64,000 nt of DNA, from assembly GCF_003704095.1 (NCBI RefSeq), contig NW_020846644.1:1-64000 (forward strand), in the 5' to 3' direction. The position numbers and the translations under genes are program-made. The notes under the pieces were generated by a model, which saw nothing but the letters and a program-made list of their open reading frames with translations, was not told the DNA's origin and did not search any database. This document shows, in pieces, positions 28,570 through 61,466 of this stretch. Within the stretch, counting starts at the first letter, position 1. Each line of letters opens with the position of its first letter. Source of the stretch: Pocillopora damicornis. Lineage: Eukaryota.

Positions 28570-29400
28570 TTTCATTTAAGTGTTGATGATTTATATTTAT
28601 ATTCTCTTACCCCGTCAAATGACTGGTGACCAGTGGTTTCTACATTAACTTGTTCTGATACACTGCTTTGGTACAACCCCCAGGTGGAACTTTGCATGAG
28701 ATAGTGGTTTGTGAAATACCCCTCAAATCCTGCCTTTGTCATGATTTTCTCTACTACATTTCCTAACTAATTTTACTACAGTTCTCCTCTCAGTTTGGGT
28801 AAAGCACACAAATAAAATGTGTTATCACTAATTTCTTTAGGCATGTGAGACAAATACTACTTATACAGCTTGACTGAGGAACGTTCTGTATTAGTTAAAT
28901 TTTTACATGCATGAAAAACTTTCCTTTTGACACACAAATGGCACAAACCCCCATTGTTTGTTTTATTAATATCCTCCATGTACTGCAAGAATTCACACTC
29001 CAATTCATCATGTTCTAAAGATAACTGAGAGTTTTTGAACCTCACATTTCGGTGTTCCTGCCCAGCCTTCAAAGCAAACTGAATGCCAAAAACCCAAACC
29101 AAAGTATAGCAAAGAATCTCCCTGTTCTTACTACCTAAAAAACCATTTTCCCACAAAAAGTTTTCTTGGTCTTCAGTTATAAATTTTGCCTGATTGATAA
29201 CCACACCTACTCCTTGTGCAGCTTTCTCTTTAATTTGAAAATTCATGCAGAATTTAAACTTCAAAATGTACAACCTTTCTTGTTAATTTATATCGTTAAG
29301 TTATATTTTGGTTATATTGCACTTGTAAAAACATTTGAATGCAAATTTGCACTCAAAGGAGGATATCAGTCTTCTAAACCTCTGCTCTCCTAAAGAAAGA
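28570..29400 (-). pseudogene. DUF3504 / Crypton-type tyrosine-recombinase-like transposase pseudogene
   Basis: ITEDQENFLWENGFLG..LCYTLVWVFGIQFALKAGQEHRNV, FEGYFTNH, TGHQS, with stops and frameshifts. Confidence 0.75.
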
Positions 29401-30141
29401 AAAACAAAGAAGCCTCTAGTAATTGGGTAAAGTATGGCCTTATAAAAAACAAAATTTCATTACTTTAAGACAGAAGCATTCATAAGTACTTGCATAGTAC
29501 TCGCATTCATAATTTGTGCAGATAATTTTGCTTCTGCAGCGGATGACATGTTAATTAATGGATCTATGAGGTCAGCCAGAAAATTTCATATATTTTTGTG
29601 GCTCAGTTTAAATAGCAATGTCTATTTTTAGTTTTCTTGTCGAATAATACATGTGAATATTAGTATACCGGTAGTTTTCAATAAATTAAGGTTCCAGTTT
29701 TAGTCTCTGGTGATACATGATTTCTCCTGATGATGTTGGAGTCTATATGTTCCACAAGTATTGTGGTCTTAAGTTGCATTTTCTTCTCTTTTGAGGTAAC
29801 TAATTTTGCAGTGGTTGAAGTTTTTAGACATCCAAGATTTTTTCAGATACCAGTAACCCATTTTTTCTTGTCACCTCTTCCCCCCACCTCCACAGACATG
29901 CACACCCACCATAATTTTAGCAAATGCTCCCTAGATAGGTGGTGTATATTGTATTGAAAGAAAAAATGTGTTCAAATTTTTAGTAAACATTCCACTCTCA
30001 AACCTCTTGTTTTAATCATGATGGTAATTGATGGGATGTTGTGATCAAATTTTTTTTTATTTCTTTAAAATTTGAATTATTAGTTGTGACAGCTTAATTA
30101 ATGTCTTCTCATTTTCCTTTTTCTCTTCAGGCAGATATGAT

Positions 30142-31222
30142 ATGAAAATGCTCTACACATCTTTGACACAGCTTCATTTCCAAGACAACCAGAGAATAAA
30201 GCATGATATTTGTAACCTGGAGTTCTCCATCCCTTTTCAATCAATTTTAAAACATCTAGACAAAAAAGCCACAACCTCAGACAAACTAGCTTGTGTCTAT
30301 ATATATGGTGAGCCAGGTTGTGGACGTTCATCAGTCTTGCTGGATATCTGTGAAAAATCTATTCAACGCAAATTGTTAGCATCAAAGGTGTGTGGTTTAA
30401 GAGTCAGAAAAGGATGTACTCTAGAGTCCCTCTGGAATTTGCTGAGTGAAATCGCAAAGGAAAGAAAGGACCGAGAGACAGCATCTACACTAACAAACTC
30501 AAAAGTCAAGTTGAGCAAAAAATACAAAGTTGCCCAAGCTTTCATTTCAGCAAACTTCCAGTTGATTTGTGTGGATGATGCAAGTGCTGATGGTGGGATT
30601 GTTTGGTCTCATCTTTCAAAGCTGTTGAACAAAACTAATATTGGTGTTGCTCTTGTTTCCAGTGAGCAAGAATGCAACTTTCCTTTCAAAGAAGAAATAA
30701 AGGATTGGCAATTACTCTCTGTGAAGGTCAAAGGTCTTAATGTGCAGTCATTTACACTGAATGTCAGAGAGTTGTATTCTTCTCTGAAGTTAAATGAAGA
30801 AATGATCTCTAAGATACATTGCATATTGAATGGCAATCCTAGAGCAGTCGATATTTTGATTAATGTTTTCAGGGAATATAACCTTCCAGATAAAAGTTTG
30901 CATTGTGTTTTTTTGTCCTTGGAAAATGACGGCATGGTGCACGAAATTGGAAAAGATGATCTCAATCCCATTTTATTGGTCCTTCAGTTTGTATTTGAAC
31001 ACCTAACTGCTTTTGAAAAAAGAGTTTACAGCCAGCTCTGCCACCTGCGAGAACCTCTTCCAGTTATTCATCTTTCAAAGGAAGCAGAGAAGCTTATAAG
31101 GCTTGGGTTGGTAACTAATCAAGCCAGTAGCCTATGTAGCAGCAAACAAGCGATTAATTTAGCATCCATATCAGTGGCTCAATGCTTTCAGCTGAGTGCA
31201 GCACAACTTCTTGATTTCTCAG
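30142..31222 (+). CDS. STAND/NB-ARC-like NTPase-encoding segment (360 codons) of the ALPK1-like gene
   Basis: VYIYGEPGCGRSS (Walker A-like), LICVDD (Walker B), ALVSS (sensor-1 position), LNGNPRAV (GxP), and a winged-helix-like FEHLTAFEKRVYSQLC..LIRLGLV. Confidence 0.75.
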
Positions 31223-34200
31223 GTAATTTAGTGTTAACAACCGAGTTGAAAACGTAAATTAGCCACCGTAAAGNNNNNNNNNNNNNNNNNNNNNNNNNNN
31301 NNNNNNNNNNNNNNNNNNNNNNNNNNNNNNNNNNNNNNNNNNNNNNNNNNNNNNNNNNNNNNNNNNNNNNNNNTGAAATGTAAGAGTAAATGGAATGCGG
31401 TCAGTGTTATCCTTCTCAGCCGTTTGTTTCATCATTTGAAACTTGAACTTGATTTTTGAAACTTGGAACTTGATTTCTCAGCTGAAGATGAAGCACCAAG
31501 CACCTTTGAATTGTGGTATGCTCTCTTGTCAAGTAAACTTCAGACACTCATTGCTGATGCAGAGAGGAATGCATGGCCTTTTGTCCCTGAGAAATGGTAA
31601 GTTGATTGATAAAAATTCTAATCTTTGTTGTTTTCGAAAATTCTGGTCGTGTCCACCATTTCTTGTCCAAATGGGGTTTAGTCTCTCAAGGAGCTGTTTT
31701 AGGTGTTGCTTCAAAATTTAAGGGAAACGACTACTATATAAGGCAATGATTGTGTCCCTGCACAACCTTAAGATTAATATTGATCTTCCCTGGTTGTTTT
31801 GGACTTGAAAAACATTAAACACTGGCAGATAATCCACACTTTTTCCCCAAAATTGTTCGTAAAAAAATAAGGGTTGTGGCTTATCTGCAATGCATCCAGA
31901 AAAAGTGCAGAAAATATTCATAAGTTAACACCATTCATCAAAAATTTCTACTTGTAAGTCTGTCTAGCAAATTTTAAAACCAGAATTTCATAAAGGTATA
32001 CCAGGGTACACACTGATCATTGCTTATGCAAGGTTGGAGGCTCCTCGAAGAGCCATTTGTGTTCATGAGCATTAATGTGGTGGCCAACACAAGCGAAGCA
32101 AATTTTCAACGACAACTATGACTTTTACAAATGAAGAAACACTATGAAGCGAAGATATATTTTACGGACAAGCCTTGAATCGTTTTATTTAACGTAGTCA
32201 AAGTATTCAAGGACTTATCGTAAACTGAAATATGAAATTATATGGAAGAAGCTAAGCTAAATTCTAATATACGAACCAACATTCCAATTATTCCGATATA
32301 AAGGCTAGATCCAAAAACTAGCTAAAACTCAAAAAGAAACTCACGAAAAGACTATCTTGAAAGAATAAAGGAGAACCGCTTGAAAACGAACTCTAACAAA
32401 AACTAATAACTAAATGGGAAAAACGTGTAGTGCTCTAACGAAACGTGAACAACGTAAGCCACGTGTTACGAGGTTGCGAAAACGAGCGATAAAGAAACTA
32501 GTGTAAAAACTAGGAAAAACTACCAAAAGACTAGATATATAGGCAAGCACAAGGAAAGGAACATAGGCACTTACATAATAGTCCCGCTTGTAAGAGTTTA
32601 ACCAAAACGAACTTCAGGTTAAGGTGGGCAAAAGGCGCTCTTCCGATAAACACGTCTTATCGTTAGCCCAAAGCAAGACAACTAACTAAAATGCGGTTCT
32701 GGGTGGAACTTAAAGATCACGTCCCTAATGGACAAACAGTAATGTCATTATTGCGGTTTAACACATTTAACACGAAACAAGCTTACTGTGAATCAATGCC
32801 CGGTGGCAAAGGCGTGGTAGCCGTTATAATTAGTTTATATTTATTGCTGACTGTTGAGTAGTGTTAAACTTTCTTCACCGACTTAAGAGACCTTTTAACC
32901 AGTTTAATGTCGTCTTCCTTGAGCAGCTAATTATTACTCGGCAAGAAATCTCCAATACTTCACAAAGCAGTAAGTTTAAACTATCACTTCAAAAGTTTTA
33001 TTAATCCATTAGGTACCCCTTTCCTAACTAAATGCAAGACTACTATGCTACAGAAAAATTAAAGATTTCCTGTTTACTTAATGCTGATTGGCTGTGATAG
33101 AAGGCATTTTTCATTATTGGAAATTAGGTCTTCTGCTGACAGTCCTTTTCATACATTGCCCGCAGGGGTTCGATCCTGTATCTACACACTCCCACTGCTT
33201 TAGCTGTGAACCCTCATGAATAGCCTGATCCTTTTAACATTGAAAGCTTAGTATTGGCAATTTACCTTAACACGAATGTGCTATCTGTCCAAAAGTAAGA
33301 ATTGCCAGATAATACGTATAATCCATGATGGATTATTTGATTCAGTCTTGTGGCTACTCATACCCCAGACAACTCCAATTGGGGAATGCTGACAGATTTC
33401 TGCGGCATTTGTTAGAAATTATTGATTAGAAATGAACAGCCAATGTCTCTACTACCGCTCGTCCTTTCTGAGACAAGTTGAATGAGGTGTGTGACCTGTT
33501 TGATGCAGCATGACCAAACTTCTTTGGTTCCAAACAAAGATTAATGCCAAATTTTCATACATTAGGTAGCTTCCCCAACCAGGCTTCCAAGCGCTTTAGA
33601 TCTTCCCTTGGAATTTGATGTACGCGCTGTATAAGTTTATATAAATCTAACATAGTGAAAAGTAACAAAAAATACACTCTTGAATGAGATAAATATACTA
33701 AAAATTCTCATTGTTCACGCACTTAAGAGGCTCAGTATATAAAGCTAAAATCTATTCTGTCAACTATTATATCACTGTATTTATTGGTTACACGAAAATC
33801 TCTTTACAGTTTCACAGTTCTGTGAAATAACCCATTTCTAGGAATGTTCAAGTGTTAACCTTGTTACTTTCGGCCCAAATTACATGTTCAGTTATTTATC
33901 TTGGTCTAAGTATGCACAAGACTGTGGCGCTATAATCAAAATTACAGTCTATGCTTAGTTCTTCTACTTACTTCTTGGCATCTTTAAATATGGATCTTAA
34001 TTGACTTTGTTCTTTTTTCAGCTGGTATGACTTTACGAGTTTGATGTGTTGGTCTTTAGAATTGTTGATGTAGGGGGCTATTTTCAACTTGGTGTTCTTG
34101 TATAACTTTTCTAATTCGACTCATCATTTCCCTCCTTTTTTCTGGCTGTAAGTAAAGTAATGGTGTTAATTTATACTTGTGTTTTTTGCTACAGTCACTG

Positions 34201-37200
34201 ATAACTTTCCTTGTTAGTCAGTCGAGTTCTTTGAGGAGATTGAGGCGCCAGTTGGTGGTCCACATACAGTACTGTTAGACAGGTACAGTATAAACATTAG
34301 TGGCACGGACTTTACGTGGTATTGACAATGGAGAAGTCCAAACTGCCCAAAGTCGATTCTTTCACTCCTTGGAAGCTTCTTCAATAACTTTATTCTCTAG
34401 ATGCCGAGTGTTCTAGTACTTTCCTAGGAATTTATAATGATCTTCATTGCCTATAAGGGGATAAAGCAGTTGTTACTTACAGGCATTTCAGTGGAGTTGT
34501 CGTTGATTGCTAGTGTTCCTTGCTTCATATGCGTTGCAGCACACTTGTTGATTCCCCATTCTAAACCAAAGTCTGCAAACATCTTCTTCAGCTTGCTTAT
34601 CACAGTTACTGCCTTTTGTTCAGATTGATGGCAAGTTTTCAAGTAATCAACAAAAAGGGCATAGGTGATTTTTCTGTGTGGGGCATGTGATAGTTGTTAT
34701 CCTTTGGTACTCCCAAGTTACCATGCAATTGGTTAAGTGATGGAGTAAAAAGTCGCACACAGAAAGACTTTGAAGGGGCCAATGGTTTCTTTGCCTTGAT
34801 GGATGAGGTCTGCATTTATGCCGTGCATTTCAAGAGTTTTGGCGATCCACTGGTGCGGGACAGAGTCGAATGCATTTTTCACGTCTACCCAGGAACAGGG
34901 TAGGTTCTTCTTGTGAAAGTGGGCGTCTCCTTATATCATCTTATCAATTAGCAGGTTGTCTACGGTGCCCATTGATTTTATTTTGCCTCCTCTTTGATCA
35001 ATTTGCATTAGATTGTACTTGTCCTCGTGCACTGGTAGTTGGTGGTCAATCACTGACGTGATGAGCCTATATAGGGTGTTTAAACAGTTTATTGGTCAAT
35101 GGTCAGAAGCGGATGGGTCGTCTCTCTTCCGAATCATAACACTTCTTCCTATCATAAGCCAAGCTGGTATCTCTAGTCTCTCAGTAAGTATGGTGTTCAG
35201 AGCTGTTGTGATGTCTCCATCAATGGTATCCATTTCCTTTATCCAATAGTTAGTGATTTTGTCTTTACCTGGCAAAGACCAGTTTATCTTGTTTTTAATG
35301 CTGTTGGTGATCATTTCTTTCGTCATCTTCATTAGATCACTTAGGTGTTTAATGTGTTTTTTAAGGGCTGTTTCAGTATCCTTTATCCAATCTGCTTCAA
35401 TAGGTACTTCGCTTGCACTCTCCCATATTGGTCTCCAGAATACTTTAAATTCTTCTGTTATTGTTGTTGCTGCAGTGGGGGTGGTTTCTTGAGTAGCAGA
35501 AGATGGCTTTTCTTTACCTATATATTGTGGCTGTTAGTTTGTTTCCAATGATTTGACGATGTTATTTAAATGGCTGTAGAACGAACTTTCATCTACATCA
35601 AACCACTGGTTGGTCTTGAATCTCTCATAGGCTGTCTTCTATCTTTTCTTCTGTCTTTTCAGGGCTCTGATGGTGTTAATCTTTCTTTTCTTTAAATCTG
35701 TCAAATTTGCGATGGTTATTCTTCCTTAAATGTCTTAAATTATTTAGGATCTGTTTTTCTTCATTCTCGACGTTAGTTGATGATTATTGCGTATTCTCTT
35801 TAATTCTTTGCATATCTGAGAAATTTGTTTTTGAAGATTGTTAATTTTTCTCTCTATGTTAATCATCCATCGCGGTTTCCCGCTAGTTTTGGTGTGTTTA
35901 CATCCTGCTTATTCAGTCTCAGTATCTTTCACAATGCCATCGTAGATACACATGGCTGCTTGCGTTATTTGTGAAATTCAATTAAGATCTTCAACTGTCC
36001 AGTCACTGCTTTGTTGTTGTTCACTTGTTTGATCTTCGATTTCTGTCTCTTTATTGTTTGGTCTTTGTTTCCTGGTTTCTCTTTGTTCTTGTAGCTCATT
36101 TGTTATGCGTAGTGCACATACCTTTCAAGTTTTATTTAGATGTGTTAATTTTTCCCTTAAAAATTTGTGCTGTTTTTCCAAGATTTGTATCCCTTCTCGT
36201 TCCAAAACTTTAACGTTGACAGCATGATTCCATTCTTTCTTCCTTTTTCATTAGTAGGTCATTCTTTCGATGTGTGTTGTTGTCTAGCTTTATCTTTACA
36301 TGTTAATAAATCAATGCACATTTGCTCCGTCCATCTTGTCCAACCATGTTGGATTCTTTCCGCACTCACTTTGCAAAGAATTGTATTTCTTGAGTCACTT
36401 TGAGCGGGCGATAGGTTGTAGTTGATGTTAACTGTCATTAAGATGGAATAAATTTCCAAAAAACACATTTCAAGAGTGTTTTAGAACAAATTTTTACGGA
36501 GCGCGAAGACTGTGGTGTTTATTTTTGTTATCATTATTACTATTATTATTGTTTAGTTTTAAGCCCTTTTTTGATGCTCTTTCCAGAAATTACTGCAATC
36601 GTTCATCATGTGTTGCTTCATCTTCCGTGCCGATTACGTCATCCATTATGACCTCAACACCATCCAGGTCTTCAATCATCTGGGCCATGGTTCTTTGGAA
36701 GATTTCCGGGGCACACTTTACGCCGAAGGGCAGCCTTGTGAACCTGTAACGACCAATTGGAGTGTTAAAGGTGCATAGAGGCGAGGACTCTACATCTAAC
36801 TTTAACTGCCAGAAGCCACTTTTGGCATCTAGGATGCTGAAAGTATGAGCACATTGAAGACGGCTAGCAACTTCATCAACAGTTTTCATAAGGTAGTGAG
36901 ACCTCTTCATGGCAGCATTTAAATCTCTAGGATCAATGCACAATCTCACTGAACCATTGGACTTCTAAACTACTACTAGTGAGTTCACCCACTCTGTCGG
37001 TTCCTCTTGGCGCACAATAACTCCGAGCTTTTTCATCCTTTTCAGTTCTTCAACAACTTTCTCTCACTGAGGTACTGGTATCTTCTTTGGGGAATGTACA
37101 ACAGGGGCAGCACTATCAGCCAGTTCAATGCGATATGTCCCAGGCAAGCATCCTAATCCTTTGAACAACTCTGGATAGTCATCTAACTCCACCGTTCTTG

Positions 37201-40200
37201 CAGGTGGTGTGTCGCTGGTCAGCTGGTGAACTCTCTTTAGTAGGCCAAGTTTGACACAGATGTTTCCACTAAGCACTAATTCCACTTCGGGTTCTACAAC
37301 AAAGAACTTGACCTCTTCGACATTATCTTTGTATTTTTCGCTTCAACACCACTTCTGCGCAAGGTGTTAGTCTGTGCTTTGAGAGGGAAATCAACATAGT
37401 GTTCGTCTTTGTCAGCGGTGGTCTTCGCCTGTGATTGTCTTAGATCTTCGGTGACATAGCAATAGCCTTTGCACCAGTATCTAGCTGGAAGCGAACTTCA
37501 GTATCTTCCACTAAAATAACTTCATAAAACTGCTCGTCTTCTGGAACACGGCTTGACTTAACTGAGTAAACAAACAGCTAGTCATCTTCGCTCTCTTCTT
37601 GGTCGGAGTCCCCTTCTGTTTCCTGGTCGGAGTCGGCTACTACTGAATGGACCTCCTTGGATAAACAGAGTTTTGAGAAATGATTCATCTTTTTGCAGTG
37701 TCTATACTGTTACCCCATTGCGGGACATTTCTTGTGGGCTTTGTCATAACCACACCGTCCGCATTTGTATTTCGATTCGACCTCCTCCGCTTCGGCGGTC
37801 TTCTCGGTTTTCCTTTTGCTTTTATTTGAACGCTTCTGACGATTCCAGGGCGGACGGTTGGGTCTTCGTCACTGGCGAGCTTTTTTAGAATGCTGAGATT
37901 TGTTTCGTAATTTCGACTGATTTCGATGGCCTTTTCACATGTCTGCTTGATCCATGCATTTCTCACGCACTTTGGAATGTTTACAACGAAAAACGATCGC
38001 GTCTCGAACCATACGTTCTTCCTCTTGATAGCCACAATCCTTAACTAGAATTTTCAGATCTGTAACAAACGAGTCGAAGCCTTCATTGTCTCCCTGGCGT
38101 CTTTCGTTAAATTTCAAAGCAGCCATTATGTGGTTTTTGCGTGGCGCACAATATTCTTCGAATCTCTTCAGTACGACCTTCAATTTCGCGGCATCTTCGG
38201 GTTTTGCGAATGTGAATCCTTCGAATACATCCAACCCTTTATCGCCTACCCACAACTTCAGGTAGCTCACGTGCTCGTTCTCTTCTTTCTTGTGCAACGG
38301 GCCGTCAAGAATGCGTTGTGCTTGTCGGCTGAAACGGCGCCATTCTTGATGCTATTCTTGAGCGGTCCACGATATCTCCGGAGGTTTGAATTTCGCCATT
38401 GTGGCTGTTTTCACAATCTCCGGGAATTCTGTGTTCTATTTCCAGTCAGCTGTTAGCTTGATAGCTTGTTTTTCGGCGTGGAAAAGAATCTCTTCCTGAC
38501 ACCATGTATTAACACTCATTAAAAGATGGCTGACAACTCTAAGTCATTGTTCCATGTGCTCAGTCACGTGAGATACATTGTGACTGACTAGGGGGGGGGG
38601 GAAAGTAAACCTGTTACATTTTATATCACACAAGCCTGCTGCTTTGGACACTCAACTACCTTCTCACTACAGGGTACCCACCCTCATGCTGAGCAGTGGC
38701 AGGGCATGAACATAACTGCATTTCAGTAATCCTTATGTGGGCCAAGACCCAAGCAAGAGAGAAGAAATACTCAGAGAGAACCATCATAAAGCTGAATAAC
38801 TGAAAACTTGGCTAGTGAAAATATCCAACTTCCCCTATTTTTGCCAATTTTATAATCTCATTTACTGGGAAAGCAAAATCTTATTGAGCTATCCCATTCT
38901 TACAGGTACCAGCTATCCTAAAACAATAACATCTATCTTTAACCCTTTCACTCCCAAGATTTGATTGTGAATTCTCCCCTCTTGCTGCTACACAATTCAT
39001 GTAAATTAGTTACAAGAATGTGGTGTGATGGTCACGTGATTAAAGTACTCAGGGGGCTGGGGTGGGTTAGCTGTCTACCCCTTACACAAGCCATGAAGCA
39101 ATTCATAGAAAGAACCACTCAAATAAAACTAAGAATAATCTTTCAAATTAAATTAAGTCCATGTTTATCTCCCTCAATCAATATTATTAGTTATTAGCAG
39201 AGCTTTGTACCTAATATTTTTACACAAACACCAGACAAAGTTCCCCAATGTGTACCCAACAAAGGCTCATGCTTGAAGAATAAGCTTGTGCACATTCAAC
39301 ATGGTTAAAACTCCCTCGTTTATTGAGGTACAGTTTCTTTTAAATGCTCCAATGTAAGCATTTCTAGTGAACCACTATTTGAAATGTTATTCAATGTAAA
39401 TTTTTCTTACAGGCAATACTCTTCCAGTGTTGGACCAGAAGAGAGGTACAATATTAAGGATCTACTTACAGCTAAGAATTCTACTGCTCCGCTCTTAAAT
39501 GAACTTGACATTATGGAGGTGGGTATTTTGTAAATTTTTTAACCCTGTTATAGAACCATAAAACTTTACACAAGTCTACCTTCACCCTGAAAGAGACTCA
39601 ATTTTGTTGCAGTGTCAAATACATTGAACTGTTTATATTCCAGCCGTATGTTTTATGATCAAATGCAGTCAGTTAAAATGGTTCATATATAACAACAACT
39701 TGTAGAAAGTTGTTCAGAGTTATTTTGCATTATTTTATTTTTAATAGTCTTTTAACAAAACCCTGGATTACTATATTAATGAGGATTTCAATGCTTTCTG
39801 TCAATTGTTTCAAGGATGATGTCAAGTATTTAAAATCTATTTACAAGGATGTACTTACCAGGAAAATAGTAGTCACCCAAATCACATTTACTACATTGTA
39901 GTAGAGGTCACACTCATGACTACAATCTCAAGATGACCAGTAATACTCTGGCGTGTAGCAACTGGAACATGTGCTGTATGAAGTGTTGTGGCTCATTTAT
40001 TGCCTTAAATTAAGAATGCAGTGTGTAAATGCTAAAAGTAGTAGTATATACATATAACATTGTTAAATAGGGTAAATATTCGAAGGTTGTATTTTATTTC
40101 TGTAAGTCAGGTTTTTCAATTGCAATAGAGAATAACAAACAATTTATTATTATTATTATTATTTTTATTATAATTACTCAAGATTTTGTAGAGTACTTTG

Positions 40201-43200
40201 TGCTGGACTTTGGCAAGGTTTTATTTTGGTGGTGGCAGAAGATGGTGGATCAGGCAAACTATTGTATCATTTGGTGTGCTTGTCAACAGCGGAAAGACAT
40301 TGGTTACTCCAGATTTTGGTGGATTTGTAACATTTTACATGAAGAGAGAAGCACATAATTCAAGTTAAGAGTAAAAAGAGAAAGAGCATTTAATTTGCAC
40401 TTGAAAGGAGAAGAGGTTTGAAACAATACATTGAAGCAAGCTCTACAATTACAGGTTGCCAGAATTGACATTCCAAAAGTTGATCTCATATTTGCATATT
40501 GATGAAGTCAAGCTATAACTATGATGTTAAAGGATTATTTTGTCCCCAAAGTGAATTTCCCTTTGTGAGAAAATTGTGTATTGAACAATTCCACTAGATG
40601 ACTCTCCTCTGTCAAACTATGAATAACACTATATTAAATACAAAATAAATCACTTAGATGTACAAAAAGCTGTTATAGACAAGCTTACACATCACATCTT
40701 AGTGTACATCTATTGAATAACATACAAAATATTTTATCCTTCACTTGTATGGCGCGGCACCGGCTATTCATAAACCATAAGGAACAAAGAATGGTGGAGG
40801 AAAAATTAGCAGTGGTAGCAGTAGTGCTGGTGGACCCAGTCGAGACGTCTTCGTAGCTCCAATTATGCAATTTCAACGGCAAATTTGATTTGTGAACACA
40901 AGAAGCAAAGTAGTGGTCTGGTAACGGTGGTCATGGTGGGCTAGAATTGCTTGATGTTCTAACTAATTAAGGGGTTACTTGCAATGTTATGGGGTACCAG
41001 ACTCTGAGCTGTTAAAGTGAGTCTTACAAGTCTGTGAGACAACGGTTTGCATTTTTTGTTTACAGTTAATGTCAAGGGGCTGGTGAGGGTCAGCCAGTGG
41101 TTCTACACTTAACCAACATCTGATGCATGTGCTCGTCGTACTCCCCTCCTGACATCCCCTAACTAACAATACCATCAGCAGTCCCATTAGCAGCCAGATG
41201 GGGAACTGAGGGTGGATGGGTGGCTTGGTTCTTTATCGAGTGCAAATATCTATTAGCGACATTTGGCATCCACAAGGGAGAGAAAATAGGCACCAGCTAT
41301 TTGAGAGAAGCTCTAAGGGGGTTGGGATCATGGATGCTCTCAGGAAAAATCTTTGTATAGATCTGTAGCGTTGAGGCATTTTCACAGTTTACCATTTGGA
41401 TTTCCGTGGTACACCAAACTGCTGACTTAGGCGGTTGGTTTACTTTCTGTTATACCTTAAGATTCCATATCAGCCACCCCGTTTCATTATGTCGTCATGC
41501 TGACCCAGTGGTATGTATGGTTGAGCATGTACGACCGGGCGCACTTCTGAGTCACGTGCGTTTCAAATCGATCCTAAGTTTTCGTTGGTTTCGTGCGACC
41601 CTCTGCATTTTCCAAGGCCCAGCTGTTTCAGGTTTCTAATCCTTGAATGTCAATCTATAAAAATAAAATTATTTTTCTCCGACTTCTTTTAGTATGGCCC
41701 ACTGATAAGCAGGTGGCATTATTGTTTGAATTTGACCAATTCATTTCGCACATTTGGTGCATTCCAATTATTATTTGCGGTTTCGAATCCCACAGCTGTG
41801 TTCTCTTATGAAATGTGTTAGACGGCTTGAAGATCAGAAATGTCGACTTGTAACCAAAATCACCTTGTCTCCAAATTAAATGAACTGGACAAATACATAA
41901 ATCAAAGAACAAAAGAAAAACCCTAAGGGTAGCTTCCCAGTGCTCACTCCGCTTGTTATGTGACCGGAAGTGCTTTTAGATCACTTGGCTGGAAGTGAAC
42001 ATTACATGCAGCGTATTTTACTGCAAGCACGACAAAGCAATCACTTGGTTGCGATTTCGCCGTTTCCACGGAGATGGTCATAAGTCATGGGGATGGTCAT
42101 AAGCCATAGGATTGTTGTATTTAAGGAGGCCGTGAAAGCTTATCTGGAGCTGAGTTTGTGTTTATTTATCAACCCTTGCTTATATTATTTTTCTTTCTTC
42201 TCGCAGGAGTGCTTGTTTCATGCAATGAAAGAGAAGAGGTACCGAACTGTGGGAGCATTAGTGTTTGTTATGGACAGATTCACTTATTGGCAAGGAATGT
42301 CTAATAGGACTCTACAACTTGTTGAATATTTGAAGACCAATAGTCCTGACATACCCATTGCACCTCAGTTACTGATAAGAAATGTGAGAATTATGAAAAA
42401 CGCAGGAAACCTACAAGGTATCTGTAAGTTTATTTTTGGAAAGTTATTGTTGTGAAAATAGGCTACTTGTTGGTAAATTGAAATTCCCTATTTTAAGTTA
42501 CGGCCAGAAACACCTTACCTGATTTCGAATTAGCTTCCAAAAGGATTTGAGAAGATGTTTGGTAGTAGATCCTGTCTTTGGTAAAGAAAAAAAAGTTAGT
42601 AAACAGATAATAACCAAGCACCATTCCAATAAATTAATTGGGTATCAAGTGCAATGAGTAAAGGAAATCTTCGCATTTTCACTTTTCAAGCATCAGCCTC
42701 GTATTCGGTCAGTGATTTTCTGTTGCACCAACATTTTGATTTTAAGCGGCGTTTGTCTTGTCAAATAATACCACGCAGTGTTACCATAGGAGTAGCCCAA
42801 ATATTCCTTGATTCATACGGTAAGGCATTGCGTCCATCTGGCCGGAGTAAATATGGAGTAATACACCCCGAGTAATCAACAGTTTGTCCTTGTCCCTTTA
42901 GGTGCAGAGAAAGCTCTTGACGATCTCCTAGATCAGAAGGCACAAATCGGTAAATGGATTTACCAGACGGAACATGATCGTCAACTTGTGAGTGCAGTGT
43001 GCTTTCAAATCAAAGGTGATATTCAGTACAACCTGGGGCAATGGACGAGAGGGGCAAAGCATTTGATGGATTCCGTGGTTTTGTTCAGGTATGCCTGGAT
43101 TCACCCGTCAGAAAAGACTGATTTTAATCGCCATATGGATATCTAGAATCATGTCACGGGGAGCAGAGCGGAAAAAGAATCCTATTGTACCTTGAATATT

Positions 43201-46200
43201 CCTATCTTTATTTGTATGTAAGCACAGTTCACAGTGATTGCAAATTATCCTTTTGTGTTGAGTAAAAATCCCAAAATTGTCCAAAGTGAAAAAAAAAACT
43301 GAAATACCTTCTCGTTACCCAGTCAAATATAATTGGTTTTTGGTCTGTTTGAATGTGTTTTCATCAATAGACTTTAAATTTCTCTGTTTTCTTATTCCTT
43401 TCAATTAGCTCACTTCCAATTCCAGATACAAAAGGAATCTCCTCCAGCCTTGCTATTCTCGGTAACTGCCTTCAGCGAATGAGTGTAACTGAGTATCTTC
43501 CTGTTTGTCACATGTATGGTCTCACAGCCTCCCATCCATTGCTTCAAGCCTATTACTGCTCTTGCGAAGCTGCTAGAAGATCACAATACACGCCACTGTT
43601 TTATGCCAGACATAAGGTAAGTGTATTAAGTACCTTACAGTGCATCCGTTGAGTCAAGCGTTTGGTAGGAGTAATGAAAAGGTTCTTGTATATTCCATAG
43701 AAGAGATTATTTTGTGAACTGTTGTGATAGCTTTGAAGTATATTACAGCATTTTCTGATGAATCGAGTTAAATATTAGTCCAAACTTTCAGTGCCCAGGT
43801 GCGTCTTTCTACCCTTCGCCTCTTCCTTTTCTTTCTACTCAATGTCCGTGAAAACATTGAAGAGAAAAGTTGTAATCAAATATAATCAAGACCCGTTATT
43901 CCCAAATACCGAAGTTATAGCTAAGTTGAGGAAGAAATGAGCCTTGAGGAGGAAAGGGTTGGGACCCTTGGAAACTAGCGCGTGCCCATCATTGCTAAGA
44001 GTTGGGAGGCTGGTGGTGTCCGGTGCAAATCTATTTTCAGCTCACTCTTTAATCCGACATCGTTTTCCGTTTGCTCATAAAGAATTCGATTTATTTTTAT
44101 TCGTGGAAATGTTTACTTTGTTAAAAGTGCATAAGTATCATTACAAATGTATCGTATAAGCTCTAATATTTGTTTAAGTGTTACTATTTCTGTTTGTGTT
44201 AATTTCGGCGACGATACACATCCATTTTGGGTGAGTATCGCGTCAAGCCCCTGCTACCACGTGAATTGTTTTCTCTTTGCACATTTAATTCCTTTCAGGA
44301 AGAGGTTTGCACAAACAGGTGACTATGGTGAGAGTTATTTTGATAGATACTCTATTTTGTGTCCCATTTAGTGTCAGGCCGGGGAACGTTTGTTGCATTA
44401 CTCAAAAGTGATTCCATGTGGAGCTACAAGGAAAAACTGTCTGATTGTTTCCATTCAAGATTTCAAAGACAGCATTCAAGCTCACAAAGACCTGCAGTCG
44501 TTGAAAAGCCGAGAGGAGTTCTTTGTCTTTGTTTGTGCAGTTTATAAGCTTGGCCTTGCATACGAAGAGTTGTCATCAGAAACTGGTTGCACTGAACAAG
44601 GGAAAGAAATATTACGAATGTCGATGTCAATGTATGAACACTACTGCCACTTCAGCGGTATGATCATTTTGGATGACGGTATCGCCACGCTAATTGCTCA
44701 CTGTCTGGATTTTTTAGGGTTGCCTCAGTGGTGTGTAGATCCTCAAGATGACAGCAAAAAAGCCCTCTCCCTAACTGTTGACGAAAACCAGTGTGGAGAC
44801 TCGGGTAAGTCAGTTTTTGTGCATTCAAGGGTACTGAATGACTGCTCGATAGGTTCCGTGGAAAGAAGTATCCGAACCGATGATCTCGAAACTCTTTTGG
44901 AGGTGCGCCGCGGAGGACTTGTGGTCACGGATAGCTTGACGGCGAAAAATTCCAACAGCGCTCTTGCTAACCCAGGAGCAAGGCCACCAGTGACAAACTG
45001 CATTGATTCAACAGTTGATAGGAGTTGTAAAACAAGGGAAAGCAGTTCAACTAGAGATTCCCCAGAACCAGCCACTGATTTATCAGGTTACAGCTTTGAA
45101 GTGACTTTCGACACTGTAGATCCCTGTGTTATAATTCAACACCTGGAACAGGAGACGGTGGCAATCAGCAATGATAAGTTTCTAACTCAAACCATAAACA
45201 ATCCAAGGCATAAAGTTCAAGGTAACTAATCTACAGTTCACTAACCTATCTATGTTACATCTACCATGATACTAGTGTGTTTACCCGACTTAACCACGGG
45301 TTGAGATTTTAGCGTATTAAGAAATGGCTTATTGTTCCGGATCAACTTTTCCAAACAAAACTCTCGAGTAATTGGTAGTCCTGAGGGACTTTGGCCGAAG
45401 GGAGGCGGAAAAGCTCATAACTGATCGAGAAAATTATCGGAGTGACAATTTTTCTGCACTGGGGGAGTGGGTAGTGTAAATATGCACTAGTAAAATCAAT
45501 CTCCATCGGTGTACCCAGGGGTAGACTTGACCCTTGTTTAGCGCATCGAGCCAAAGGTTCGCAAATTCAAAAATAATTAAATTTATCCGTATTACAGTGA
45601 CTCATTTAAACCACCTCTCTCTATATGTAATTCAAGTCGCCTGGTTTTTACCAGTCAGTTTTGTCAACGTACAAATGTATTTTTTGGTCTTACTACTGGT
45701 GCTAAATACAATCGAAAGTGACGATTTTCTTTGGAGAGCCTCGAGGCGATTAAAGACCATGTTTCTGGCGCACAGCTGTTTTCAAACGAGGCGCTCATCA
45801 TTTTTAGAACCAACATGTTTACCTAACACAAGGATCCTTCTTTGTAAAAGCGCCGAATTCGTGTAACTATGTTGATGATACAAGATATACTGATCAAAGC
45901 AATGATTTCTAGTTTTTGCGAGAGCATGTATTTGAGTTATTTTCGTTTTCAATCAAACGCGTGGCAAGGTGAGGGTGTGATATTTTTTCTCTCACAAGTC
46001 TCACAATGAATAAGGTGCGAGTTTTTTTTATTTATCTTTTGCAAAAAAAAAAGCGGGTCCTGCTTAAAAGTAAGTCTCTCTCATTAAAAACTATCAGAGC
46101 TTTACAGCGAATTTTAACAATCTTTGTTAAAAGTAAGGAGCTGTCAACAGCTTCTCCAAATTTTCGTAGAGAGCAGGCGCTGGCGCACAGCTGTTTTCTA

Positions 46201-49200
46201 ATGAGGCTTACTTTCTGAAACCAACAAGTCTACCTTAGAAGAGTATTCTGTTTTACAAAAGCACAGAATTCTTGCAACGATGTTGATGACACAAGATGTA
46301 CTAATCGAGGAAATTATCTCTAGTTTTTGAGAGAACATCTATTTTGAGTTATTCACGTTTTCAATCAAACGCGCGGCAAGACGAGGGTGTGATATTTTAC
46401 TCACAAGTCTCACAATGGAGAAGAAGAAGAAGACCATATGCAGGCACTATGCGTATGCCACATAAAGTAAAGGATTATGAAATAGAAATATTACTCGCGT
46501 TACTACTCGTTAATTAGTAGTTGCCTTTTTGAGTGAGCTGGAGAGAGTTGTGAGAGATTTCCCTCGAAAGAAAAAGACTGTTTTTTCGAGGTTTTGAGAG
46601 TATATTCAATAATGGCCTCTGCGGGGTTGTGCCTCTTCGAGAGGGTCCTCTTTTCAGAATAGTGGTATGATGAATAACGTTGCGGTATAGTAACGTCCAA
46701 GGAAAACTGCCGTTTGGATGATGTGAAAGGTCTTTCTAGGTATCTAGGTATCAATATAGAACGATAAGATTTTTGAGATGATAGTAATGTAAGGGTATTT
46801 CCTGGAAAAGATAATTTATCGATGGGTACCTTACGGATGTGCGTTAGTGGGTTGAATCCTTCAGCGCAGCGTCCCCTTTATGTTTAAAAGAATGATGATT
46901 AAGGATTATAGTAATTTTTCTCTGGTCAAAAGTACTTGTTAACTGAGGGTTTTCTTTTTTTTTTTTTTCTTTTTTTTTTTTTTGTAGCTGCTATTGTTTG
47001 GAGATATGACTACCATCGGAGTGAATGGAAAGGGGAAAAGACGTTGGCATATGTTGGAGATTTACTCGAGTTGGAGGAAGGCAAAGAGGGAGCACAGAGA
47101 AATGCGTATATGGTTGAATTTGTTGATCAAGAAGATCCTTTGGCAGGGTAAGGTACTTCTTTCAGCATGTCTCGGTGAACTTGCAGTCGAATTTCAAACT
47201 GAAAGACACTTTTATTGTTTTTATTGTTGTTATTATCATAATTGTTATTATCAATACCATTTTCTTTAAGTTTATCACGATCTTTTTTATCCCAGTTGGA
47301 GGATGGAAATATTTTTCTAGTAACTTTTTTCCTCGAAGTTTGCAGCGACTATTTTTCTCAAGTTGCATCTTGTTACAGAGTCTGTTTGAGCTCAGACAGA
47401 GGCTTTGATTTTTTATTAATGAAAAACTGGACCATTGCCAGAAGTTTTGTTGGAAGTTACACACCTATTATTAAGTTAATACTGTGGATAAACTGGCTTC
47501 ACGAGGGCATCTTAAAGAACGATCACTACTAAAGTTCATTCAAGCAGTGTGAGCTAATCATGAATTTCAAGTTATGATTTTTTCTGCCATTAACTAAACA
47601 TATTGTCTGAGATTTGGTCGAAGATTTGTATGAGGCTGGATTGATTGGAATGTTATGGTATTGGCAACAACAAGAAAACTACCGGTTAGGGGTGCTTTAT
47701 TGATTGACCAAATTTATAAGATGCTATTTGACGGAGTAATATTGGTGAGTTGTTTCAACAATATACTGGTAATCTTATTTCAGGTATGTGGCGAAGTGTT
47801 ATAAGAAGCCCAGAGATATCAAACAGTATCAACAGGATATTATTTGTCAGATGACAGCTCGTCATTACGTCACACTGTTCAACCAACAGCTATATCTTGC
47901 AGGTGTGATACAGATACTCAATAATACTCTTGTGCGCAAATTTGAGTTTAATCAAATCTATAATGTATTCTCTTTTATGCGTTTTATACTTTCAACCCTG
48001 CGACACATTGCGCGATTTGCACTGCTGTTTAAGGAGGATGTCGCCATTTATGGGCTTACCAGACAAAAATGTTTTTGGTCCCCTATTGGAAATATGTCTA
48101 TCATTATAACAGTCACATGGTCATAAAATTACTTTTGGGTTCCGATTCGTTGACTTTTTTGGCGATTCATAAGGTTAGCGTAGAGAATAATGGGAATTGG
48201 TGTTGTATGCAGTTTCGGCGAAATTAACCGCGGAAATCTATTATTTGTATTACAAGAGACAAAAGCTTTTATTTGGCGTGAAGATATGGTCGATGCTTGA
48301 AAATGATGTACCCATCACGTTTAAAGCAAAACCCATTGTGCCCAATGGCTAATTTCAGGTCCATTGTCGAACAGGACATGGCGGATCATGGATCTAATTA
48401 TCCGCTGTCAAATCACTCAGGCCAGTGGAAGGACCTTAAGATTCTCGGGAAATAGAATTAACTGTTTTTTTCGAGACATGCTGATAGCTTTTGTTATTAT
48501 AGAGTTTAGATGTTGTTAATAGCTGTTAATAATAACCCGTCAAATGTTTTGACCCTTGTGCGATTGGTTGTAACGTGTCACATGACTGAATATGCCTTGG
48601 AAAATTTGGGGAATATCCGGGACAACTACTATATTCCCCAATTTTAATACCTCACTTCCTTTCAGAAGAATGTAACTTCGAAGGACTTAGGTGTTTCGTT
48701 CAGCTGGGGTTCATTGCGGCGCAAGACTAAGAAATGGAAGTAATGTACAACGCAGTTTGTCTTTCACAGAATAATTTCTTAGTAAACATAAACGCTGTAT
48801 GAACATTTGCCGTGGGTATAACTTTTAACTGAGTCGACCGTACATTTACAAAGTAAGCTTATCCTCGTGTTTAGAAACCAAAACCATTAATTAACGTTTA
48901 TATTCCTATCATTCCTAGCTTTGAATGTGGGCGATATTCAGTTCCTTCCTGTAGTGTTACTTCAACTTGTTGACGTGTATGGCTCCGTCAGTGGTGCCGT
49001 ATATAACGTGGAACCCTACATGGCAGGGGAATTCGTCAAACTCACCAACAACTTTGGCTTTGTAAGAAGAGAAGACGACATGTCCGACGTAGTGTTGGCA
49101 TTCAGTCACTTCACATACGAAGAATCAAACCAGCAAATGGTGATCGTCGACATTCAAGGTTGGACTCCAGATACTACTGACAAAGCAAAGTGCACATTTC

Positions 49201-49358
49201 TCACCGACCCTCAGATTCACTCGGTGCGATACCAGTGTTTTGGAACAGGGAATTTAAGTCAGCGTGGCATTGACAGTTTTTGGAAGGAGATGCATCCGCA
49301 TTGTAACGACATTTGTATCAAGTTAGGACTATCCAGGCCGAATATCACATCAAAATGA
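30142..49358 (+). CDS. ALPK1: ALPK1-like alpha-kinase with an N-terminal STAND/NB-ARC-like domain, about 1158 aa
   Basis: Segments 30142-31222, 31482-31596, 39413-39518, 42207-42417, 42902-43088, 43409-43616, 44372-45221, 46988-47147, 47784-47902, 48919-49358 (3477 nt, GT-AG, phases consistent, no stops). ALPK1 N-terminal signatures WPFVPEKWQY, VMDRF, PIAPQLLIRNVR, PDTKGISSSL, YTPLF. Kinase motifs GAQRNAY, YVAK, QMTARHYV, VEPYMAGEFVKLTNN, VDIQGW, LTDPQIHS, HPHCNDIC. The start codon is uncertain (acceptor at 30130). Confidence 0.9.
31223..31468 (-). mobile_element. Antisense Penelope-like insertion (spans the 100-N gap 31274-31373) with a 13-bp TSD
   Basis: 31223-31273 is the reverse complement of the PLE tail seen at about 1425-1465 and 18118-18160. 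TSD cttgatttctcag at 31210-31222 and 31469-31481. Confidence 0.8.
32076..32575 (-). mobile_element. Possible LTR (~500 bp)
   Basis: TGT...ACA termini, a minus-strand TATA-like motif and AATAAA, and a weak purine tract next to it. No partner LTR seen. Confidence 0.35.
33200..36500 (-). mobile_element. Decayed RLE-type (R4/NeSL-like) non-LTR retrotransposon
   Basis: NWSLPGKDKITNYWIK, IPAWLMIGRSVMI, PINCLNTLY, LFVDYLK (FxDD position), FGLEWGINKCA, YKFLG. Many stops. Ends are approximate. Confidence 0.8.
36555..38577 (-). mobile_element. Ty3/Gypsy LTR retrotransposon 5' half (gag-protease-RT pseudogene, PBS, short LTR)
   Basis: gag LKLWVGDKGLDV..FEEYCAPRKN, protease FQLDTGA, RT RLCIDPRDLN..LDAKSGFWQ..RLPFG..IMDD. 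PBS TGGTGTCAGGAAG at 38492-38504. Candidate LTR 38505-38577 with tgtat/ataca ends. Confidence 0.9.
45765..46416. repeat. Two diverged ~240-bp direct repeats
   Basis: ctggcgcacagctgtttt...gagggtgtgatatttt..ctcacaagtctcacaatg at about 45765-46008 and 46180-46417. Confidence 0.8.
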
Positions 49359-49864: not shown

Positions 49865-50284
49865 TCACGTCAAGATTCGATTTAGCGCCCGGGCCGCTTA
49901 TTTACTTTGGTACCTCAAGGTAGGGCGCTTATTCGAAACAGGGCGCTTATTCGAAACAGGGCGCTTATTCGAAACAGGGCGCCACACTCTTATTTCTTTT
50001 TTAGAAATGGCAGAATGTGCGAAAAGAAGCTTTGATCTTTACTTACTAAAGGAACAATACCAGAAACTTTAAAATTCACAAATGTACAGCGATTATTGGC
50101 AAAAATAATGGTAGGGAATGTACTCTTGAAACAGAATAGGGGCGCTCACTGAAGTGAGGGTCCTTATGCAACAGGGGCGCATTTTAAAACAGGGGCGCTT
50201 ATTGACAAAATCAAATTCGAGGAGGGCGCTTACTAGAGAGGAGGCGCCTAATGAAACGAGGGCACTAAATCGAATCCTCATGGT
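49865..50284. mobile_element. MITE with TIRs and internal 18-bp (agggcgcttattcgaaac) repeats
   Basis: TIR gattcgatttagcgccc / gggcactaaatcgaatc. Three perfect 18-mers at 49922-49975 and degenerate copies at 50139-50250. Confidence 0.75.
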
Positions 50285-51979
50285 GGTCCAGTTAAAAATA
50301 CTGAAAACGAGTGATTGTTTAGTTGTAAGACTTAGTCAAAGTACTGTTATTCAGTTACTGTAAAGTGGGATCGTATGATCTCAAGTAAAATTGCGGAAAA
50401 CTAATAACTCCTAAAGTTATCTTAAACTGTAGACGTGGCGGGAAATCTTATTTGCATTTCTAAACCGAACTTCGAGTATTTTCTTCAGTTGTACCTTGCA
50501 ATAAGACAATTAAGACACGTGATCACATACTTTACAAGTTATTTTTAGTTATTCGAACGCTTGGGTAACATTTAGTATTCGCTTAGCTTATGAAATGATC
50601 TCAGAACTGTTTGTATAAAAATAGTGCCTTGAAACTGTTATTTCGATTTACATGGGATTTACGTTGAAGACGCAATAAACGCAAGTGAAAGTGGAGTTCT
50701 AAGTCTCTTTTGGGTTGGAAATCCGCCAAGCGGATGTTCAGAGATAGTCTCCCCCAATTTGGTCAGTTTAGGCGAGAAGTATGATATATTCCGTTTCCCT
50801 TCCATCCCTGTACACCCCAAACCTTTCTTCTCAATAGCAGATTGAAGGCAAAATTGCAGCGAACGCATCGCATTCGTTTCTTAACCTCCCTTTACTAGGT
50901 ACTAGCTATAAGCTATCTGGCAGGCTAATCCTTTTCCTAATTCCTTTTGCTTTGAAATCGAATTTTGCCTCCAAATACTTGACCACATGTTCGTCTAGAA
51001 TGGTTATTCAACGTTTCGGTTGAGTTGTCAATTCTCACGCGCCTTTTTGCTCAGATACAACACATGCCACTTTAACAGGTAGGTTCAGATGGTGGCTGAT
51101 CGCTAATTCGAGTGCAAAACCTCCTTGGAATCGGCTCATTTATTGAAAATAGAGGAAATTCAATGCCACACTTTTGTTGACAAATGACATGCAAAACCGG
51201 AGGACACCTACGCGAAATGCCGTGAATGTTTAGTGTAAATAGCCCTTATGAAAAACGCACTTTTAATTAATGAAAGGCGATCAATTATGGAAAGGCCGAA
51301 GGAGTGTGAAGTAAGTAGATCCTCTACAAATGAAGCAATGATTAAGGAAATGCCTATCATGTAGAGTGTAGAAATCTGCAACCCTTTTCTCGTCTGAAAA
51401 AAGGATGAGTTTACCAAAAAACAAAAGAATTAATCTCTCTCATCCTACCAAGTAAAGTCGAACTTCCCAATGCAAAAAAAATCTCGAAAGCGAACATACC
51501 GAAATATTTCAACCTTAACGTGAGTGTCTCCCTCCATAAACGGCAATCTGGGTAGAGAGCATGAGAGGGGTTTTACGTCCAGTGCCTTGAACACAACAAG
51601 GTGGGCGAAGTCTAGTATCCACCTTGCCAAACGCATGATAATGCAAGGTTGTTTAAAAATGATGCATGCGAAAGTTATAGCCAGCAGCTGTTCAATACTG
51701 GTAAAACTGGGTAATCTCACTTTAAATTAGTTAATACTCTGTACGTGTAAATAAACTTTCGCTTTCGAAATAACTTAAATTTTCTACAAAATTATCCGAG
51801 ATTTAGGGTCCACGTTAAATTCGCGGTTCTACTCTTTGAGTATTAGCTAAACTGAGATAATACGGAGAAAAACAGCTACTCCTACAGCTACACAGCTAAA
51901 CAGCTACACAAGCCTGCGCATATGTGGCCTGTCCAATCCTTCGATTTTAACGCCTCTCTCAGTGTAAAGCATGATCAGA

Positions 51980-61309: not shown

Positions 61310-61466
61310 AGCAGACTACCCTCCTTCACTTTACTTAACCATCTTTGAAGAAATCACCATGCTTGACTTCTGGCACTATCAGCATTATATTTTCTGAGAA
61401 ATTTGCAAAACAGAAAGTGCTTGGATTGATCTTGTTCTTAAATTTCATGAAGTCAGTAATTCATTG

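Follow-up and report, generated by a model that had tools for sequence, protein, structure and literature searches.

An ALPK1-like gene of the coral Pocillopora damicornis joins a predicted NB-ARC-type STAND module to an ALPK1 helical domain and alpha-kinase in one reading frame

Is a protein in which a STAND module precedes the sensor domain and kinase of ALPK1 encoded as one unit in a coral genome and, if it is, what might such a protein do? The question is raised by a locus of the stony coral Pocillopora damicornis on contig NW_020846644.1 (RefSeq assembly GCF_003704095.1), positions 1 to 64,000 of which, read on the forward strand, constitute the stretch of 64,000 nucleotides analysed here and referred to below as the window. 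A first-pass annotation, made from the letters of the window, had proposed that an ALPK1-like gene at 30142-49358 (+) encodes a hybrid innate-immune receptor of ~1158 residues, in which a STAND NTPase of the type found in NOD-like receptors (NLRs; NOD, nucleotide-binding oligomerization domain) and Apaf-1 is followed by the ALPK1 helical N-terminal domain, a short linker and an ALPK1-type alpha-kinase. We find that the gene has ten coding exons with 1158 codons in total, that its parts are joined in one spliced mRNA, and that the N-terminal module is most probably of the NB-ARC type. What the module does for the protein is a question of likelihoods, which are weighed below.

Exon boundaries (Table 1) were set from the public model P0052 (XP_058972304.1, 'alpha-protein kinase 1-like isoform X3' of Pocillopora verrucosa, RefSeq), from six transcript contigs and from splice signals. 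The window exons were searched individually, and the public models P0052 and P0078 served as the spliced reference for whole-protein comparisons. The exons of the window are 97-100% identical to P0052, with exon 1 (E1) 99% identical to P. verrucosa and 97% identical to P. meandrina, the gene model of which has 1159 residues. The ATG at 30142 starts an open stretch of 360 codons that reaches the GT donor at the end of E1, and the coding lengths of E1 to E10 add up to 3477 nt, that is, 1158 residues and a stop codon, in agreement with the phase-consistent frame proposed before. Along this frame, the STAND module (residues ~1-345) is followed by the ALPK1 helical domain (~345-730), a variable linker and the alpha-kinase; the exon map thus reproduces the proposed order, with the helical domain C-terminal to the STAND module and the kinase last. 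Because the 5' untranslated exon (E0) holds an in-frame TGA, translation is taken to start at ATG 30142, which leaves no room for a CARD, death or TIR domain ahead of the module. An alternative 5' leader was found near 26491-26521; both leaders join the acceptor at 30130/30131 in different RNA runs, and both contain in-frame stops. Variation within the coding region comprises two E4 donors 6 nt apart (42417/42423), by which two residues are added or dropped, and the loss of ~210 nt (about 44803-45012) within E7, in the linker, in RefSeq isoform X3. Additional paralogues in this genome were ruled out, as the STAND module and the ALPK1 domain each occur only once in it.

The junction between the two parts of the gene lies close to an assembly gap, a run of N at 31274-31373 that falls within intron 1, 52 bases past E1. 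E1 is present in RNA runs from four separate studies, some of them polyA-selected and some labelled coral metagenome, and the junction was checked in one run from each study. In three of these four runs, single contigs (X1#3, X6#23 and X10#9) cover 30130-31209, skip 259 letters bounded by GT and AG, and resume at 31469-31597; no E1-E2 joint was found in the fourth run, X5. The contigs from X1 and X10 go on past E2 into letters encoding QYSSSVGPEE, which is E3 at 39413, and X10#9 extends 554 nt beyond E2. Because the RNA contigs splice out intron 1 exactly, the gap has no bearing on the reading frame or on its continuity. In a relative, a 4441-nt transcript contig (L008) carries an open reading frame (ORF) of 1210 residues, P0021, that runs from the NB-ARC module through the alpha-kinase. 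The STAND module, ALPK1 helical domain, linker and alpha-kinase are therefore shown to be encoded by one spliced mRNA in one frame. RNA spanning 30142-31596, which the first-pass annotation had asked for, links the STAND exon to the ALPK1 exons in contigs of three studies, and the alternative it had named, STAND and ALPK1 exons in separate mRNAs, fails against these contigs and against the ORF of the relative with all domains.

The intron that interrupts the junction appears to be a late addition. A 13-bp string, CTTGATTTCTCAG, is present at the end of E1 and is repeated just before E2, and intron 1 is made up of a copy of a dispersed repeat and one copy of this 13-bp target duplication. The insert starts with GT and the second 13-bp copy ends with AG, such that splicing restores the uninterrupted exon of relatives, which lack intron 1. 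The segment 31374-31427 recurs across the genome in at least 41 copies of 91-98% identity, and the RNA depth at 31184-31274 is 100-200 times the exon depth. Intron 1 thus looks like a recent intron gain through repeat insertion; an Rfam scan of the intron for the ribozyme of a Penelope-like or retrozyme element gave only chance-level small nucleolar RNA matches (E 0.19 and 0.9). A search of exon 1 against 1.84 billion representative proteins returned only 18 relatives, all of at most 448 residues. These are single genomic ORFs in which the P-loop module passes straight into the WPFVPEKW motif and which end at the next intron, and their profile matches human ALPK1 at the junction (E2 in Table 1). 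In 12 of the 14 aligned relatives (alignment A1), the stretch from P-loop to WPFVPEKW is uninterrupted within one exon, so the STAND-ALPK1 junction is no artefact of gene modelling. One could still suspect that adjacent genes were merged by gene prediction, or that a chimeric assembly formed across the gap, given how near the gap lies to E1 and given that intron 2 spans 7.8 kb and contains a reverse-transcriptase fragment. Yet RNA contigs from three studies bridge the gap, two of them reaching E3; the junction intron is missing in relatives; the same gene order recurs on a contig of a distant relative (L011); and full-length models are available for at least seven species. We rejected a chimeric gene model on the basis of the RNA contigs, the single-ORF junctions and the 1210-residue transcript ORF, and give an artefactual fusion next to no credence.

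What fold does exon 1 encode? The AlphaFold2 model of residues 1-360, computed from 15 input sequences, has a mean predicted local distance difference test (pLDDT) score of 83.6 and a predicted template modelling (pTM) score of 0.82, and the top ranks of a Foldseek search were taken by NRC2, Apaf-1, the NRC1 NB-ARC domain and CED-4 (E 2e-9 to 1e-7). In VIA-align comparisons, the model gave Z scores of 21.6 with resting NRC2 (312 residues, 4.0 Å), 20.3 with the NRC1 NB-ARC domain and 20.3 with ADP-bound Apaf-1, followed by the archaeal STAND-TPR protein 6mfv (18.1), MalT (17.2), NLRC4 (15.7) and NLRP9, NOD2 and NLRP3 (13-15). Cdc6, ORC and clamp loaders reached about 12, compared with 20-22 for the NB-ARC structures, and a Cdc6/ORC-type AAA+ identity was rejected for this reason. 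The profile of the relatives matches the STAND-TPR chain 9m0n_A (4e-8, the best match in the PDB) and CED-4 (7e-4), and in embedding space the Nematostella module has mainly NB-ARC clusters as neighbours. Among Pfam families, NB-ARC aligns with exon 1 over positions 8-247 of its 248-position profile (19.9 bits, 4.7e-4) and AAA_22 scores 3e-5, both sub-threshold; NACHT scores in the relatives (13-19 bits) are also sub-threshold and lower than those of NB-ARC. With confidence, we assign exon 1 to a predicted NB-ARC-type STAND fold composed of a nucleotide-binding domain, a helical domain with the GxP motif and a winged helix. The structural model thus agrees with the earlier reading of residues 1-360 as a STAND NTPase, and of the motifs that had been read from the letters, Walker B (L-I-C-V-D-D), GxP and the winged helix hold up, whereas a canonical Walker A does not.

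The remainder of the protein resembles ALPK1 throughout. P0052 matches the structure of the human ALPK1 N-terminal domain, 5z2c_A, over residues 9-390 with an E of 7e-55, and E5 alone suffices for a match to this structure (Table 1). The kinase part of P0052 matches the ALPK1 kinase-domain chains 8zd3_B and 9j4p_A at 1e-49, compared with 6e-20 for eEF2K and 1e-18 for MHCK-A, and Pfam Alpha_kinase is found at 48921-49355 (4.8e-34) and in P0021 of the relative (4.8e-44). Both the helical N-terminal domain and the ALPK1 type of the kinase had been recognized in the first-pass annotation and are upheld by these matches; the linker, which it had called short, comprises ~120-190 residues and is short relative to human ALPK1 only, not in itself. 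Equivalents of human Arg116, Arg150, Asp231, Ser236 and Phe295, which we take to be ligand-contact residues, are conserved, as is that of Tyr254, as read from the alignment of P0052 with 5z2c. The same alignment shows conservation of the equivalents of Arg153 and Lys233, the ADP-heptose contacts of human ALPK1, mutation of which blocks activation (PMC10723048). By these comparisons, the gene is the sole Pocillopora orthologue of ALPK1, and we regard the NB-ARC-ALPK1 architecture together with ALPK1 orthology as very nearly certain.

The architecture extends well beyond Pocillopora. With E values of 1e-63 to 1e-116, a hidden Markov model (HMM) built from the STAND module only matches the N-termini of annotated proteins both from the corals P. 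meandrina, Stylophora pistillata, Montipora foliosa and M. capricornis and from the sea anemones Nematostella vectensis (LOC5511752) and Actinia tenebrosa; the cnidarian search that had been suggested thus recovers the module in five genera. No module was detected with this HMM in any listed fish, shark, frog, reptile or bird ALPK1. The position of WPFVPEKW differs correspondingly, lying mostly at residues 55-59 in the vertebrate ALPK1s that carry the motif and at residues 367-392 in anthozoans, with 390-392 for the Pocillopora protein. In a maximum-likelihood tree, the module tracks the species tree: Pocillopora groups with Stylophora, and Montipora with P0021, the two groups join, and the sea anemones form a clade of their own. 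This tree shows that, among stony corals and sea anemones, the module has been passed on by vertical descent together with ALPK1. On contig L011 of the distant relative, an NB-ARC exon with a Lys-type P-loop is followed by ALPK1-domain exons on the same strand, and the encoded ALPK1 domain is 36-45% identical to that of hexacorals and 34-40% identical to that of vertebrates. This gene order and the near-equal distances to hexacorals and vertebrates hint that the fusion may be old, possibly ancestral, with loss in vertebrates; a weak alignment also links residues 9-25 of human ALPK1 to the final helix of the winged helix in the coral module. In a more far-reaching scenario, NB-ARC-ALPK1 would be the ancestral state of the family: the ADP-heptose-binding domain would have originated in an Apaf-1-like STAND protein with a kinase effector, where it served as sensor arm; in vertebrates, the NOD would later have disappeared, with TIFA polymerisation taking over the oligomerisation step; and the coral and anemone receptor would still form a multimeric kinase platform on ligand binding. 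We put this forward tentatively and think it, as a whole, rather doubtful. As a separate observation, P0008 and P0051, both from the clade with Lys-type P-loops, come from one sample, which indicates at least two copies in that organism.

Overall, we explain the gene as an ALPK1 orthologue that would act as a nucleotide-sugar sensor kinase with an NB-ARC regulatory module, an explanation that we consider reasonably probable. In the cytosol, the protein would act as a kinase that senses a bacterial nucleotide sugar, either ADP-heptose or a close analogue. Binding of the ligand by the helical domain would release the kinase, as in human ALPK1. Regulated self-association or autoinhibition would be contributed by the NB-ARC module, which is placed relative to the helical arm as the NOD is in MalT and the archaeal STAND-TPR protein. 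Innate-immune nucleotide-sugar sensing by the coral protein is also somewhat likelier than otherwise. Because TIFA, the vertebrate substrate of ALPK1, is reported to be absent from invertebrates (PMC12457700), the module may replace TIFA and supply in cis the oligomerisation step that vertebrates get from TIFA polymerisation. We suggest this with reserve and hold it to be less likely than not; that STAND-driven oligomerisation would itself be the signalling step is possible, but we incline to doubt it.

Several observations weigh against this explanation and favour others. The NB-ARC score of exon 1 in the window lies below the curated Pfam cut-off of 23.5 bits, which is exceeded in the relatives P0021 (24.9), P0028 (26.7), P0011 (25.3), P0014 (23.9) and P0008 (41.8). 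The Walker A motif of the window reads GxxGxG-R-S-S and departs from the canonical GxxxxGK[ST]; the position of the lysine is occupied by Arg in all stony corals seen, by Cys in sea anemones and by Gln in one relative, such that the lysine is replaced in all hexacorallian members, and only a separate, well-supported clade, made up of six sequences, retains the canonical GK[ST] P-loop. P0008, P0011 and P0013-16 are of this Lys type. Equivalent substitutions of the Walker A lysine abolish function in Apaf-1 and NLRs. Furthermore, the second acidic residue of Walker B varies among relatives, none of the 16 aligned members has a His or Asp at the winged-helix site equivalent to the MHD/LHD histidine, and the sensor-1 Arg is absent from the module in the aligned members. 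A canonical nucleoside triphosphate switch is doubtful because the Walker A lysine is replaced and the MHD histidine is missing. As judged from these residues, the STAND module probably does not cycle nucleotide like Apaf-1; more likely, it would be a nucleotide-bound or nucleotide-independent scaffold, comparable to plant sensor NLRs with degenerate P-loops. The module has also diverged at about twice the rate of the ALPK1 parts of the protein, with identities in three comparisons of 43, 26 and 27% for the module, 69, 51 and 48% for the N-terminal domain, and 75, 59 and 57% for the kinase. The altered motifs and the faster evolution would suit a pseudo-NTPase that serves as a constitutive structural, dimerising or autoinhibitory appendage, with signalling as in vertebrate ALPK1 and no regulated oligomerisation. 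Nonetheless, the P-loop glycines, the first Asp of Walker B, the GxP Pro and the LRxPLP motif of the winged helix are invariant or nearly so, the GxP Pro being invariant in all relatives. Moreover, the Arg at the lysine position is common to both major stony-coral clades seen, which speaks for a stable state and not for decay, and the model fits ADP-bound resting NB-ARC structures best. With a ratio of nonsynonymous to synonymous substitution rates (dN/dS) of 0.37 between two relatives, the module is shown, on the measure of codon substitutions, to be under purifying selection. We therefore consider a mere pseudo-NTPase appendage possible but rather unlikely.

Another point against the long protein as the working form comes from a second class of transcripts. 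Six transcript contigs from six runs (L002-L007) start at 41864-42114 in intron 3, continue colinearly into E4 and are fully spliced through E10; the only product that they encode has 713 residues and lacks the STAND module as well as the beginning of the ALPK1 domain. The cluster of this 713-residue ORF has 140 members, and comparable ORFs of 717 residues in the Stylophora cluster and of 723-738 residues in the Montipora cluster are both common. An internal promoter in intron 3 probably gives rise to this STAND-less isoform, and the long form may be the minor one; the two isoforms cannot be ranked by contig depth. Conceivably, the short isoform is the working coral ALPK1, and the long NB-ARC form is minor or regulatory, for example a decoy or inhibitor. 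We deem this improbable, as the short product would start only ~60 residues into the ALPK1 domain and so miss the invariant WPFVPEKW helix, which vertebrates keep, as the long form was assembled in at least three studies of the species and as a full ORF in a relative, and as the STAND exon is open and under purifying selection across Hexacorallia. Regarding the ligand, human Thr237, a specificity-determining position at which mutation broadens the ligand range (PMC10723048), is Ser in the coral protein, and the N-terminal domain is only 33-34% identical to those of vertebrates. Combined with the reported lack of TIFA, these differences could mean that the protein is an ALPK1 orthologue by descent that does not sense ADP-heptose, and that it instead responds to another metabolite or takes part in symbiont recognition or vesicle transport, not in antibacterial immunity. 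The conserved equivalents of the contact residues described above, as read from the alignment, argue otherwise, as does conservation across Hexacorallia, in which the N-terminal domain ranks second among the parts of the protein, and we judge a departure from ADP-heptose sensing to be unlikely.

How does the proposed nucleotide-sugar sensor kinase with its NB-ARC regulatory module compare with known systems? With vertebrate ALPK1 (5Z2C, 8ZD3 and 9J4P) it shares the homologous helical domain and alpha-kinase, the order of sensor, linker and kinase, and an identical WPFVPEKW motif, and its kinase is closer to vertebrate ALPK1 than to eEF2K or MHCK; in contrast to vertebrate ALPK1, it has ~345 extra N-terminal residues that form the NB-ARC module, a much shorter linker, and Ser in place of Thr237. 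Like Apaf-1, CED-4 and plant NRC proteins (NB-ARC, PF00931), it would possess a three-part core, with Z scores of 20-22 over ~310 residues and the best fit to resting, ADP-bound states, and a sensor domain C-terminal to the module. Unlike these proteins, it has no N-terminal CARD, coiled-coil (CC) or TIR effector and lacks the Walker A lysine, the MHD/LHD histidine and the sensor-1 Arg; its sensor arm is the ALPK1 helical domain and not the WD40 or LRR domain of Apaf-1 and NLRs, and its effector is a C-terminal alpha-kinase. Prokaryotic STAND proteins (MalT, 8bob; archaeal PH0952, 6mfv; the TPR protein 9m0n) resemble it in that a NOD is followed by an all-helical ligand-sensing arm (Z 17-18), but they end in DNA-binding or other effector domains or in none, never in an alpha-kinase, and keep the canonical GK[ST]. 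Animal NLRs (NOD2, NLRC4 and NLRP3) and cnidarian NLRs likewise combine a STAND-class NOD with a presumed role as cytosolic microbial sensor, and the similarity in fold is significant (Z 14-16). The NACHT NOD, the C-terminal LRR and the N-terminal CARD, PYD or DD that characterize animal NLRs are, however, not found in the coral protein, the NOD of which is nearer to NB-ARC than to NACHT and which has neither an LRR nor a death-fold domain. Its kinase is built in, whereas NOD2 recruits RIPK2.

Downstream of the ALPK1-like gene, at ~50000-61395 (-), lies a convergent gene that encodes an eEF2 kinase orthologue (PDB 7shq, E 4e-173). Its 3' end overlaps the 3' untranslated region of the ALPK1-like gene, so that two alpha-kinase genes are arranged tail to tail, and RNA assemblers merge the two because of this overlap. 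The reverse-transcriptase fragment of intron 2, at 36590-36949 (-), matches Pfam RVT_1 (5.5e-14) and is flanked by broken ORFs; it is a decayed retroelement that makes up some of the length of this intron. The 5' intron contains, at 28857-29273 (-), an ORF with a DUF3504 domain (7.4e-12) that probably derives from a transposon. In the region of the DUF3504 ORF, 29154-29438 (-) is covered by two small RNA contigs of run X1. A second assembly gap, of 100 N, is situated outside the gene at 1206-1305 of the window.

Table 1. Features of the ALPK1-like gene and of the neighbouring eEF2 kinase gene (eEF2K), in window coordinates
Feature	Position	Strand	Evidence or remark
E0, 5' untranslated exon	27033-27161	+	RNA contig leaders before 30130; GT donor after 27161
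E1, NB-ARC-type STAND module (predicted nucleotide-binding domain, helical domain, winged helix), residues 1-360	30131-31222, coding from 30142	+	Pfam, AlphaFold2, Foldseek, VIA-align, RNA contigs
Walker A (P-loop), residues 56-64, Arg62 at the canonical Lys position	30307-30333	+	
Walker B (hhhhDD), residues 141-146	30562-30579	+	
GxP motif (G-N-P), residues 231-233	30832-30840	+	
Intron 1, holds the assembly gap	31223-31481	+	RNA joint 31209>31469, GT..AG; 13 letters fit either side
E2, junction into ALPK1 N-terminal domain, ends in WPFVPEKW (~human ALPK1 39-66)	31482-31596	+	profile of relatives matches human ALPK1 residues 39-66 (5z2c), E 8.7e-6
E3, ALPK1 N-terminal domain	39413-39518	+	RNA contig continuation after 31597; tblastn of P0052
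Intron 3, 3' end; six transcript contigs start here	41864-42206	+	L002-L007 colinear into E4
E4, ALPK1 N-terminal domain, equivalents of human Arg116, Arg150, Arg153	42207-42417	+	alternative donor 42423
E5, ALPK1 N-terminal domain	42902-43088	+	5z2c residues 162-224, E 1.3e-8
E6, ALPK1 N-terminal domain, equivalents of human Asp231, Lys233, Ser236, Phe295; Thr237 replaced by Ser	43409-43616	+	
E7, end of N-terminal domain and poorly conserved linker	44372-45221	+	isoform X3 skips ~210 nt inside
E8, start of alpha-kinase domain	46988-47147	+	
E9, alpha-kinase domain	47784-47902	+	
E10, C-terminal part of alpha-kinase and stop TGA 49356-49358	48919-49358	+	Pfam Alpha_kinase 4.8e-34; 8zd3_B, 9j4p_A 1e-49
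eEF2K exons	61395-60917, 60471-60432, 59489-59316, 57424-57265, 56207-56143, 55444-55325	-	
eEF2K exons, continued	54956-54613, 54362-54221, 52998-52813, 52664-52536, 52271 downward	-	

The sequences themselves are not new. Public entries label them 'alpha-protein kinase 1-like' or 'uncharacterized' and give Alpha_kinase as their only precomputed domain, and the name 'ALPK1-like' has been used, without analysis, in an Acropora genome-duplication paper and in a TRPM paper. No description of this architecture turned up in full-text literature searches on ALPK1 or alpha-kinases in combination with NB-ARC, NACHT, cnidarian, coral or invertebrate, in line with the statement of the first-pass annotation that it knew of none. 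A 2025 paper from an ALPK1 laboratory states that invertebrate lineages have neither ALPK1 nor TIFA (PMC12457700). ALPK1 has thus been regarded as an invention of vertebrates, but stony corals and sea anemones possess a full, expressed orthologue with sensor, kinase and contact residues, and this sensor family would have to be at least as old as the common ancestor of cnidarians and vertebrates. The NB-ARC fusion brings together in one polypeptide the STAND/NLR-type receptors and the alpha-kinase metabolite sensors, which have so far been treated as separate families. How a kinase could be driven directly by an NLR-like core, and how signalling proceeds without TIFA, thereby become testable questions, and Nematostella offers a genetically tractable system for such tests. 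In corals, the protein is a candidate cytosolic sensor of Gram-negative bacteria and may as such bear on disease and on control of the microbiome.

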